Assembly (NCBI GenBank): GCA_964035545.1
Contig: OZ037768.1
Coordinates: forward strand, 21,125,700 to 21,189,699
Direction of reading: 5' to 3'
Source: Bugula neritina
Lineage: Eukaryota; Animalia; Bryozoa
Length of the DNA stretch: 64,000 bases
The notes under the pieces were generated by a model that was not told the origin of the DNA, did not search any database, and saw only the letters and a list, made by a program, of their open reading frames with translations. A program made the translations under genes and the position numbers. Below are positions 30,532 to 48,500 of the stretch, piece by piece; the first letter of the stretch is position 1, and each line of letters starts with the position of its first letter.

Positions 30532-33500
30532 GTAAGACTTTAATCAGAATATAACCAAATTCCTAAAGTACTTTACTAATTGGTAGATGGCAACAAGAAA
30601 AAATGAAAAAGCTTATAACTGTTTTCTAAATTTAGATCCTGGCCTTTTGACATGTAGACATTAAACAACATTCTCAGCTATGAGCAGCTCATGAATTGAC
30701 AGTATAAAAACATATATATATATATATATATATATATATATATATATATATATATATATATATATATATATATATATATACCGCGTAACTTAAATACATT
30801 GCACCTGACTTGACTCTGTATATTTTACCATGCAATTTGCAAACTTTGTAGCTTTGCGTCCACTCTGCCTACTTTATGTTCATTATATATAGTACGATGA
30901 TAATAATTCTGCTTTTCACATCCTCTCCTTTGAGATGCAAACCCTCGCACTCACCATTTAATATGATGTTCAAATCTCAGATTATTAAGGGTAGGTAATT
31001 GTTTCCAAATGAACTAAACTTGTACTAATATATATTTATTGTTACAGCATAAGCAAGTTGACTAATCTGAAGGTATTAGATATGAGTCACAACTACTTTT
31101 TTGCTAGTCTACCTGACATCTTCAGTTCGCTACTTTCTCTGGAGGAGTTGAGGTTGAGAGACTGTGGACTTCAAACTCTCCCCAACAGGTAAAAAACACT
31201 TTATATCTCCTGTGTTATATGCTAATATGTTACACTTGAAGTAATCCTAGCTTAGCTTCGATGTATCATTTTTCATATTTAATAACAGTGGGTATCTGTT
31301 AAATAATATATAATTCTATAAACTATCTAAATCAACATCATAACCTGCTGCATAATTTTTTACCCTAAAAACACATTAACAGATTTCCTCTAGGTGTTTC
31401 TACTCATATTATTCGCATTCTATAATTCAAAGTAGTAAAAGTAACAGAGTTAAATATAGAGTTTTACAAACCAAAATAAGCTTCCTATAATATGTAATAA
31501 TTCCAGAAAGACAATATTATTTATATTTATACATGATGAAAAACATTACGTTATAGGCTTTTACTCCCCACTGATAATTTACCCTTTTAAAGTTAACCGC
31601 AATTTTGGAAAACTTTTCCGTAAACATATAGCATAGTTTCTTATCCCTGAATTATTGAATCACCATGTAGTCAACAATACTCATTAACGTATATGCATGC
31701 ATTCTATTTTCTATAAAACCGAAAGTAGTTTTGAGTCATTTCAGTGCTCTGTAAACTGCACATTCTGAATGCTGTTGCACTAAATCTTGCATTTTGTTAA
31801 TTTTGTTAATGGTGTAAACTTTTCTTGTAAAATATTTTTCGAAGTAACCAGTTGTTATATGACATATCTTTAAAGCCATTATCAAGAATTATTTAAAGGC
31901 CCGTTCAAACTAAAATATACTTATACTGTTATATTTTATTGTTACATGCAGCATCAGCCAGTTGACTAATCTGAAGGTATTAGATTTGAGTAACAATTAC
32001 TTTTCTGCTGGTCTACCTGACATCTTCCTTTCTCTACTCTCTCTCGAGGAGTTGAGGTTGAGAGACTGTGGATTAAAAACTCTCCCCAACAGGTAAAACA
32101 CACTTTATATCTCCTGTGTTATATGTTAATATATTGTTATACTTTAAGTAATCCTAGCTTAGCTTCGATGTCTCATTTTCTATATTTTATAAAAGTGGGT
32201 ATCTGTTAGATAACATACAATTCTTTAAACTATCTAAATCAACATCATAACCTGCTGCATAATTTTTTACCCTAAAAACACATTATATAACATACTTTCT
32301 CTAGGTGTTTCTACTCATATTATTCGCATTCTATAATTCAAAGTAGTAAAACTAACAGAGTTTAATATAGAGTTTCACACACCAAAATAAGCTAATTCCT
32401 ATAATATTATGTAATAATTCCAAAAAAACAATATTATTTATATTTATACATGATGAAAAACATTACATTATAGGCTTTTACTCCCCACTGATAAATTACC
32501 CTTATAAAGGTAACCCATTAACACATTTTATATAACATATATGCATGCATTCTATTTTCTATAAAACTAAAAGTAGTTTTGAGTCATTTCAGCTAGTGCT
32601 CTGTAAACTGTATAAGCATTCTGAATGCTGTTGCATTAAATCTTGCATTTTGTTAATTTCGGAGTAAGCAGTTGTTATATGATATATCTTTAAAACCATT
32701 ATCAAGAACTATTATCCTGTTCAAACTAAAATAGATTTATACTGTTATATTTTATTGTTACATGCAGCATCAAAGAGTTGACTAATCTGAAGGTATTAGA
32801 TATGAGTAACAATGACTTTTCTGCTGGTCTAGCTGACATCTTCAGTTCTCTACTTTCTCTGGAGGAGTTCAAGTTGAGAGACTGTGGACTAGAAACTCTC
32901 CCCAACAGGTAAAACACACTTTATATCTCCTGTGGTATATGCTAATATGTTATACTTGAAGTAATCCTAGCTTAGCTTCGATGTCTCATTTTTCATATTT
33001 AATAAAAGTGGGTATCTGTTAGATAATATATAATTCTATAAACTATCTAAATCAACATCATAACCTGCTGCATAATTTTTTACCCTAAAAACACATTATA
33101 TAACATACTTTCTCTAGGTGTTTCTACTCATATTATTCGCATTCTATAATTCAAAGTAGTAAAACTAACAGAGTTAAATATAGAGTTTTACACACCAAAA
33201 TAAGCTTCCTATAATATGTAATAATTCCAGAAAGACAATATTATTTATATTTATACATGATGAAAAACATTACATTATAGGCTTTTACTCCCCACTGATA
33301 AATCACGCTTTTAAAGTTAACTGCGTTTTTGGAAAACTTTTCTGTAAATATACAGCATAGTTTCTTATCCCTGAATTATTGAATCACCGTGTATTCAACA
33401 AAACTCATTAACACATTTTATATAATATATAACGTATATGCATGCATTCTATTTTCTATAAAACTGAAAGTAGTTTTGAGTCATTTCAGTGCTCTGTAAA

Positions 33501-45500: not shown

Positions 45501-48500
45501 TTTGGCTAATGTTGTAAACTTTTTCTGGTAAAATATCTTTAAAATTAACCAGCTTTTATATATGATACATATTTAATGCCATTATCAAGAATTATTTACC
45601 CGTTCATCTTTAAAGCCATTATTAGGAATTATAAGTAACTGGTTCAAACTAAAATGTAGACTTGTACTGTTATCATTTATTGTTACAGCGTCAGCAAGTT
45701 GACTAATCTGAAAGTATTAGATATGAGTTACAATGAATTTTCTGCTGGTCTACCTGACATCTTCAGTTCTCTACTCTCTCTGGAGAAATTGGAGTTGATA
45801 AAGTGTAAACTACAAACTCTCCCAAAGAGGTAAAACACACTTCATACATCCTACTGCTATGTTACATGTAGTAATCTCTGTTTAGTCTCGCTGTCTAATT
45901 TGATATTTTATCTTAAAACAAGCTATATGCTTTGAAAGAATAAACAATAACATAAAGTATTCTACATATTATTTAAAAGTCTCATAATTTTTCTTATATA
46001 ATTAAACTCCAGAAACTCGGCTTGAGTTGGAAAGTTATATGGCACAAGTTTCTACTACTATATATACAAGAGAATTATTACATTTAATTATATAGTATGA
46101 ACTATAATTTCATGAAGTTTTTCAAAAATAAAAAAACAAAATCATAGCTTGCAAAATGCAGACTTGTAAAATAGCATAAAGCTATAGTCGATTAACAGTC
46201 AACCAACTTTGTATTATATTAATTGGGAACCAAGTAATTCTGATTTGAAATGTAGAATTGTTACACATAAGATGCATGTTATATCTAACATATATTTAAC
46301 ATAAGTATTTTCTTGCTTTCATACGTATCATTAGTTGGGAATTTATTAGAAGAGAAAGTCTTAGAAGCTGAACAAGGATTTGCTGTTAAAATTTCTGATT
46401 TTTGTGGCAGCATATTGGTGTCATAGGTTCAGGAGAGCTGCTCTGTTAGCGTAGGGCCACATTAGTTGTACTTTTGAGTGCGAATTCGCACGGTTGGGAA
46501 TTGGAGCAAGATCGGAAGAAGGCTGCTTATATAACGGGAGCTAGCAGACTTAACTTTTTGTTAGTAAAAGCAAATATTTAATAGCTATAAATGATATTTA
46601 CATTAAGCTTTACTCTTCACCTTGTTTTAGGGCTATAAATTGAAGTGTGGAACGAGTCAAATGTTTATTTTTAAATCTCACTAACTCACTAACACTATCA
46701 ATCTTTACAAAGTTGCCCATCGTCCATAATGGATACTTGTTATGTTTCACTGTAATCTAAAACTGCTTCCAACAAAACTTTTTTTAGTTTCCGGATGCAG
46801 CATGCTTTCTGGTAAAATTTAAGAAACAGTTTAAGATGTACATGTTTTACAGTTTGGGCACTCTGCACAGCTTGAGACATCTGGATATTTCTCACAACAA
46901 CTTCAAAGAGATTCCTGATTCCGTATACAGCTTGAGGAGCTTGGAAACACTTGACCTTTCAGACAACTCAAATCTTGAGCAGATGAAATCAAAATTTCTC
47001 CAGCTTACCAAATTGCAACAAATTTCTCTATTTGGTTGTATTAAAATCAGGTTTCCACCTCAAAGAGTTTGCGAACAAGGAGTCAGTGCAATCAGACTGT
47101 TTTTTCTAGACATGAAAATGGGAGCTGGAAATAGCCTCCCTCTTGTTACAATAGCAGTGATTGGCAACACGATGGCTGGAAAAACTAGTCTTATTAAAAC
47201 TTTGCAAAATGTTGGCAGGACCAGAGTTGTAACAAATCGGAATCCTGAAAATAAAATTGATGAAACTACAAAAATTCTCAAAGTTGAAAAGTTGGAAATT
47301 GGAAAATGTTCACTGCAGCTTATTGATATGGGTGGAAATGAAGTTTACCATACAACATACCAACTTGCCTTGCATCAAAATTGTGTCCCCCTGATTGTTG
47401 TCAACATGGCGCAATACAGAGATCACGTAGAAAAGTCATCTGAAAGAGAGGCTGTCCGTAGACTCGCGTTTGACTATATGTCTCACCTTTATCTCGCAAA
47501 CCCTTCAATGGGCTCACCAAAACTGGTTCTTACACACAAAGACCTTTTTAGTGTCACGTCAGAGTTTGCCGAATTGAAACAATGCTTCTTGAGCACTTCC
47601 AATCAGTTATGCAAAGAAATAGTTGAGGAGGAAAAACAGTTGAACAGACATTTTTCTCTCATTAAACAATTTTCTGAGACAACTGAAAATATTTTTCTTG
47701 CGGAAGATATTTATGAATTTGGTAAATGGGAAGATTACGCTGTCTTTGATTCACTGAAAACCCATCTTCTTTTGGCCTGTCAACCTTTTCTTGAGGTGAT
47801 ACCAGCTCTTTGGGAACAAGTTAGCCAAAAAGTGTGTTTTTTACCCTCAGCATACTGCACTTTTGAAGAGCTTTTCAACCATTTGAAACAAACTTTCAAA
47901 TCTATCAAGCAAGCACAGCTTCAAATAATTCTCAACTATATGCACCAATGTGGAAAAATCTTGTGGTACAAAAACACAACAGGTCTTGAGAGTTGCATTT
48001 TCCACAATATCCCAGCACTGACAGATCTGTTGGTAGTTTTTTATAGTCACGAAGGAAACAGATGGTCACAGAGACGTGAGAGTTTTGTACCCTTTATAGA
48101 TGAAAATGGGGTGAGCATTGAGCTTGAGCAATTTGATGCATTTGTCAAACTGTTCAATAGTACTGCTGTTATGGCCAAGCAACTGTTTTCTTATTTGATA
48201 CAAAGTGAAACGCTGTTTAAAACCAAAACAGATTTGAATGTCGCAGTGAATGTTTTGAAGGTATTTCGTCTAATTTATGGTCCAGTTGCATGTGACGTTA
48301 CCAGTACAGGATTTTACATTCCTTACATGGTAGAGCAGTTTTCTGACCGAGATATCATGTCAAAAGAAGAACTAAGCTTACGAGTAGACTTAGTGTTCAA
48401 AGGTTTATCTCTCCCACAGCATGCATATCATCAGATGAGTGTAGGCATGCTAGAGCTTTTTCCTAGTTTGATTGCTTCATCGATGGTACACAGAGACGGT

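Follow-up and report, generated by a model that had tools for sequence, protein, structure and literature searches.

What does it mean when six exons of one gene share a single length and a single phase? The question is raised by a stretch of 64,000 nucleotides from Bugula neritina (the window, to whose positions all coordinates refer unless a contig is named), in which the first-pass annotation had seen a sensor built from interchangeable 141-nt LRR cassette exons, any subset of which might be skipped, gained or lost in frame. All six exons are indeed there, with AG/GT borders, no stop, and phase 2 in and out. They belong to an open gene model, here called gene B, of 16 exons and ~1451 codons (29895-56607, + strand); each exon was checked singly, and domains were likewise searched exon by exon rather than on a spliced protein. 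The parts of the gene are as follows.

29895..29928, + strand: probable exon 1, with ATG and phase 1 donor; start predicted from sequence; 88-91% identical in paralogs A and C
30294..30531, + strand: N-terminal cap exon, 238 nt, phase 1 to 2 (sequence and paralog comparison)
31048..31188, + strand: cassette 1, 141 nt, two LRRs, phase 2-2; type-1 intron end upstream
31952..32092, + strand: cassette 2, LRR, 141 nt
32768..32908, + strand: cassette 3, LRR, 141 nt
33789..33929, + strand: cassette 4, LRR, 141 nt
34447..34587, + strand: cassette 5, LRR, 141 nt; type-1 intron end upstream
45689..45829, + strand: cassette 6, LRR, 141 nt
46853..48987, + strand: large exon, 2135 nt, with the last LRRs, ROC GTPase and COR (Pfam, motifs)
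49286-49369 and 49729-49919, + strand: two linker exons (homologous exons in B. neritina protein P0019)
50376-50546, 54677-54899, 55231-55416, 55883-55992 and 56470-56607, + strand: caspase domain, five exons (Peptidase_C14)

The order of domains in gene B is LRR arm-ROC-COR-caspase, two LRRs being encoded per cassette and the six cassettes making up a 12-repeat arm. A Pfam search of the cap exon gave no match. For the large exon, the Pfam Roc match (E 5.9e-7, above the cut-off) upholds the ROCO assignment made in the first-pass annotation; the ROC motifs P-loop GxxxxGKT, DxGG and THKD (i.e. G1, G3 and G4) are intact, and the same ROC also matches LRRK2 and prokaryotic Roc. COR follows directly after ROC, with Pfam matches that are both weak (COR-A E 0.004, COR-B E 0.04), and ROC-COR as a whole aligns unbroken with an amphioxus ROC-COR (E 9e-27). 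The caspase is recognized by Pfam as Peptidase_C14 (E 8.4e-9), and its catalytic His (SHG) and Cys (EVCSG) both lie in exon 54677-54899; the stop codon is in exon 56470-56607. By these domain tests gene B is a predicted ROCO protein with a caspase (C14), in which the switch is ROC-COR and not a STAND (NACHT/NB-ARC) NTPase, and the model contains neither a signal peptide nor a transmembrane exon. Among named proteins, those of Bugula neritina (83-90%) and Watersipora subatra (35-37%) come closest. A pseudogene was ruled out as far as the frame is concerned, all exons of gene B being open; an assembly artefact was ruled out by differences of 8-16% between cassette copies, and an incomplete gene of the VLR kind by a germline gene B that is complete and open. 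The caspase intron 50547-54676, in which a 22-bp tandem repeat occupies 53953-54304, exceeds by ~3.7 kb its counterparts in paralogs A and C and in the draft orthologue described below.

The origin of the six cassettes can be read from their introns. Pairwise identity among the cassettes of gene B is 84-92%, and introns 1-2, 2-3 and 3-4 are all copies of a single unit (91-94% identity where they align); intron 5-6 has both ends of this same type and has grown to 11.1 kb through nested transposons. That the exons agree in length and phase is therefore the outcome of duplication of one unit and not of six independent coincidences. Two types of upstream intron end, distinguished already in the first-pass annotation, were found again, one before cassettes 1 and 5 and the other before cassettes 2, 3, 4 and 6; the type-1 end (224 nt, 85% alike) is the 3′ end of the first LRR intron of gene B, and intron 4-5 is composite. 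Gene B stands between paralogs A and C in a tandem group on one contig (C4), in which A, B and C have 6, 6 and 5 cassettes, and comparison of the introns of B with those of C bears out the proposal of a block duplication followed by unequal crossing-over. Intron 4-5 of B aligns over its whole length with intron 2-3 of C (85%), so that the duplication of a block extending into the first intron came before the B/C split. Introns 1-2, 2-3 and 3-4 of B all match intron 1-2 of C and, to judge from these matches, gene B gained two cassette units after its split from C.

Gain and loss of cassettes, which had also been proposed, is apparent from their numbers in related genes. A fourth paralog (contig C6, 12741776-12761597) has 26 cassette copies, 10 of which come from a 4962-bp block repeat, and some of the copies have lost their donors. 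A B. neritina draft locus, orthologous to C (support of 100 in the ROC tree), has 4, and four Watersipora genes have from 1 to 6, with identical 141-nt borders. In the draft orthologue a two-cassette block was repeated once more, and one exon was lost together with both splice sites through a 197-nt deletion that begins 33 nt ahead of the exon, ends 22 nt beyond it and kept the frame. Cassette number changes in the germline, then, through duplication of exons with their introns, through unequal crossing-over and through deletion, and the frame is kept every time. Taking the draft locus for a second haplotype was rejected, its flanks differing by 5-8%; it probably represents a sibling species. 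The cassettes of the C6 paralog lie in groups with a spacing of ~422 nt and a distinct cassette type at each group end, and its 4962-bp duplication holds a 3.3-kb exact stretch, which indicates either a recent event or an assembly error. In cassette 4 of paralog A (contig position 21103895) a small deletion has removed the acceptor and the first codons, and at one Watersipora locus the six cassette copies comprise two damaged ones, two used in the RefSeq model and two that are intact and unused. Two orphan cassettes, both located between paralogs A and B, are present in the window:

2129..2269, + strand: orphan intact cassette, without N-exon or ROC exon of its own
from 2922: second orphan cassette, cut after ~40 nt by a Gypsy fragment

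At the scale of the genome, at least 63 scored ROC exon matches (155 candidates) and at least 150 scored cassette matches (812 candidates) were obtained, the latter clustered upstream of ROC exons and distant paralogs being counted by coordinates only. Since Watersipora shares the 141-nt borders, the cassette design must be old within the cheilostome bryozoans: it predates the Bugula-Watersipora split and is repeated across a large gene family. A scan of metagenomes with the cassette alignment gave no confirmed match.

As regards mosaic modules in gene B, the signs are suggestive at most. The PHI test for recombination inside exons is significant in the C6 gene (p 0.0003) and not in the C4 cassettes (p 0.10-0.25). 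In a tree whose branches are for the most part weakly supported, B cassettes are interleaved with those of A and C instead of grouping as a clade of their own. The flanks of cassette 4 are of the kind found at cassette 2 of C, yet its exon is 97% identical to cassette 5 of C (UFBoot 98); as a constraint test did not reject the positional grouping of cassette 4 (AU p 0.125), and both exons are near the majority state, gene conversion into cassette 4 from C cassette 5 is suggestive only. A further AU test, of upstream-intron against exon tree, was discarded because a fold-back corrupts the alignment of cassette 4. This fold-back and the larger insertions among the cassettes are listed here.

33583..33756, no strand: fold-back inverted duplication of intron sequence, 87-nt arms, 98% alike, no loop
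35217..36604, no strand: intronic transposon fragment, 105-nt inverted ends; 197-aa ORF at 35666-36259
36759-45008: non-coding element around the LTR insertion, 218-nt outer and 85-nt inner inverted arms
37290..44791, + strand: Gypsy-type LTR retrotransposon in intron 5-6, 307-nt LTRs with 9 differences, ATAT target duplication

The fold-back ends 32 nt upstream of cassette 4 and is built from the intron sequence just 5′ of the branch region of that cassette; it could affect splicing, or could be the mark of a template switch. The 197-aa ORF resembles a Penelope-type GIY-YIG endonuclease. The non-coding element sits within an AT microsatellite and served as target for the LTR insertion. With LTRs that are 97% alike, the sense-strand retrotransposon of 7.5 kb is a recent arrival in intron 5-6 and may impair this copy of gene B. 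Gypsy-type relatives (70-78% alike) occur at 2922-6300, at 37290-44791 and in the last LRR intron of paralog C, i.e. in or beside cassette introns of three neighbouring gene copies. Further transposon fragments are found at 45255-45460 and 59400-60900, and between the orphan cassettes and gene B lies a long 30-bp minisatellite (14490-19700) with higher-order repeats of ~1.5 kb and a strong strand skew.

Variation among the cassettes is concentrated at codons 14, 16, 35, 37, 38 and 40; a structure model of the Watersipora arm puts strands at cassette positions 9-13 and 33-37, and the variable codons thus lie on the exposed strand and in the loop next to it, where LRRs usually bind. The comparison of codon models M8 and M8a gave a 2dL of 26.8 for the C4 set (17 cassettes; omega ~4 at these same six sites), a significant 2dL of 63 for the C6 gene set (omega ~10 at face sites) and a significant 2dL of 33 for the Watersipora set (sites 14, 16, 38 and 40), with codons 14, 38 and 40 positively selected in all three. 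Fixed trees were used and recombination can inflate codon tests; the signal remains significant on a star tree. Overall omega is near 1 and, for the six cassettes of gene B alone, neutrality was not rejected (p 0.10). In a model-free comparison of six cassette pairs with collinear flanks, the introns being locally aligned, differences amounted to 19.4% at face codons, against 8.8% for framework codons and 8.2% for flanking introns (Fisher p 3e-5); face codons diverge 2.4-fold faster than the flanking introns, and also exceed synonymous divergence. In the pooled sets, concave-strand and adjoining-loop codons have been diversified by positive selection, and the algal-like receptor diversification suggested by the first-pass annotation is upheld for the binding face at this pooled level.

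We consider it fairly probable that gene B is a cytosolic one-chain receptor, with an LRR sensor, a ROC-COR switch and a caspase effector, of which the sensor is diversified in the germline. By analogy with ROCO and inflammasome biology, a ligand would bind the 12-repeat arm, the bound arm would shift the nucleotide and dimer state of ROC-COR, this shift would bring caspase domains together, and the joined caspases would bring about cell death or inflammatory cleavage. Known ROCOs also serve trafficking and motility, a point that counts against a receptor. If bacterial LRR-ROC-COR-effector proteins are a guide (PMC8195603), the overall role could be that of an NLR or inflammasome analogue directed at pathogens or non-self, and diversity would reside mainly between genes, haplotypes and species.

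A more prosaic account is relaxed or neutral turnover, whereby a tandem array, rich in transposons and prone to recombination, drifts in cassette number, the variable sites are unconstrained surface and gene B is maybe decaying. The overall omega, the orphan and broken cassettes, the many transposon insertions and the non-significant result for gene B alone would all be accommodated. But drift does not predict that face codons outpace both intron and synonymous divergence, that omega exceeds 1 at the same sites in two genera, or that 16 of 16 exons of gene B stay open despite ~10% divergence from the paralogs; already weakened by these results, it appears to us very unlikely. Another use of such a receptor would be allorecognition, the arm reading self and non-self proteins at colony contacts and the caspase executing rejection. 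It suits a sessile colonial host, a death effector within the same chain and a diversifying LRR face, and PMC13449251 provides a fungal NLR precedent in heterokaryon incompatibility; however, a model lacking signal peptide and transmembrane exon, and dozens of dispersed loci instead of one segregating locus, are not what it would lead one to expect. The data do not separate it from pathogen sensing, and we hold allorecognition to be improbable.

As to splicing, the 64 combinations of the first-pass annotation are correct as arithmetic, and not an observation. If many cassette subsets were skipped, one gene would amount to a repertoire, as discussed for Ectocarpus ROCO, NLRP3 and Dscam. The phase 2-2 symmetry would allow it, but symmetry follows from duplication alone, and animals commonly have two-LRR exons that keep the frame (in humans with length peaks at 141-147 and 168-174 nt; PMC6642158), so that symmetry in itself does not imply a repertoire. 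In favour of skipping, the cassette donors of gene B are GTAAAA, off consensus at +5; against it, those of Watersipora are the consensus GTAAGT. A weak hint comes from one Watersipora homologue, whose RefSeq model, a prediction, uses 2 of the 4 cassettes that are intact at its locus; in other Watersipora models no intact cassette is left out, no splice isoforms were seen among them in a protein cluster look-up, and no mutually exclusive arrangement of cassettes was seen. Skipping has been reported for brown-algal ROCOs and demonstrated for NLRP3, which it inactivates rather than retargets (PMC6642158). On balance such combinatorial splicing is doubtful, although cassette mixing by splicing within the animal is possible and may add to diversity. 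The boldest extension would have dozens of LRR-ROCO-caspase genes multiplying specificities by combinatorial skipping or mitotic recombination, with zooids or colonies differing in repertoire for pathogen defence or allorecognition; we mention it as a long shot.

The main finding is the gene family rather than cassette splicing. No paper on a bryozoan ROCO or ROCO-caspase family, and no molecular literature on bryozoan immunity and allorecognition, was found in a search that had most subscription papers outside its reach; this is apparently a large receptor family in bryozoans that has so far gone undescribed. Of the earlier reading, the ROCO assignment, cassette turnover, face diversification and algal parallel were right, while the C-terminal caspase, the size of the family and its age had been missed. 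With ROC-COR in place of the NLR switch and the caspase in the same chain, the family makes it possible to test directly if animal ROCO proteins work as immune sensors, and supplies candidate genes for bryozoan immunity and allorecognition. The gene B locus is a small, well-resolved member in which the steps of cassette gain and loss are readable.

Parts of the design are already known elsewhere, the domain architecture from amphioxus and bacteria and the cassette logic from brown algae. The amphioxus protein C3XQ16 (P0057), from another animal phylum, is an LRR-ROC-COR-caspase protein of identical domain order, which is only 22% identical to gene B over ROC-COR. Watersipora subatra XP_067949573 and XP_067949579 are true homologues (35-37%), with the same 141-nt exons and a caspase; their MFHAS1/MASL1-like names are automatic only. 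Human MFHAS1 is not known to carry a caspase. The bacterial LRR-AP-GTPase(ROC)-COR-effector proteins (Kaur 2021, PMC8195603), described as counter-invader systems with caspase listed among their effectors, have the same domain order, fast-evolving LRRs and several paralogs per genome, but they have no introns and their effector varies among paralogs, whereas the bryozoan genes keep one effector and vary their sensor exon by exon. With vertebrate NLRP/NLR genes (Hoss 2019, PMC6642158) gene B shares frame-preserving two-LRR exons and the sensor-switch-caspase logic; NLRPs differ in having 171-nt exons, a NACHT switch and a caspase on a separate protein, instead of 141 nt, ROC-COR and the same chain. 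Gene B is not an NLR and is at most NLR-like in its working. Somatic VLR receptors start from an incomplete germline gene to which flanking cassettes are added in the soma, unlike the complete and open one found here.

The closest parallel is with the LRR-ROC-COR genes of brown algae (Zambounis 2012, PMC3341825; Teng 2024, PMC11378527). In both, the LRR arm is encoded by symmetric phase-2 exons and varies in its number of repeats, some LRR exons are inactivated or orphaned, birth and death are clustered, and selection acts at concave-face sites (for the bryozoans in the pooled sets). The exon unit is 72 nt with one LRR in the algae and 141 nt with two in the bryozoan; inverted intronic cassettes are an algal feature of which none was found here, and splice variants have been reported only on the algal side, the bryozoan gene having an animal as its host. 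The algal proteins carry no C-terminal effector, while the bryozoan gene has in-frame caspase exons. The bryozoan gene works like the exon-shuffling ROCOs of brown algae, and departs from them in two of their defining features, the size of the exon and the lack of an effector.
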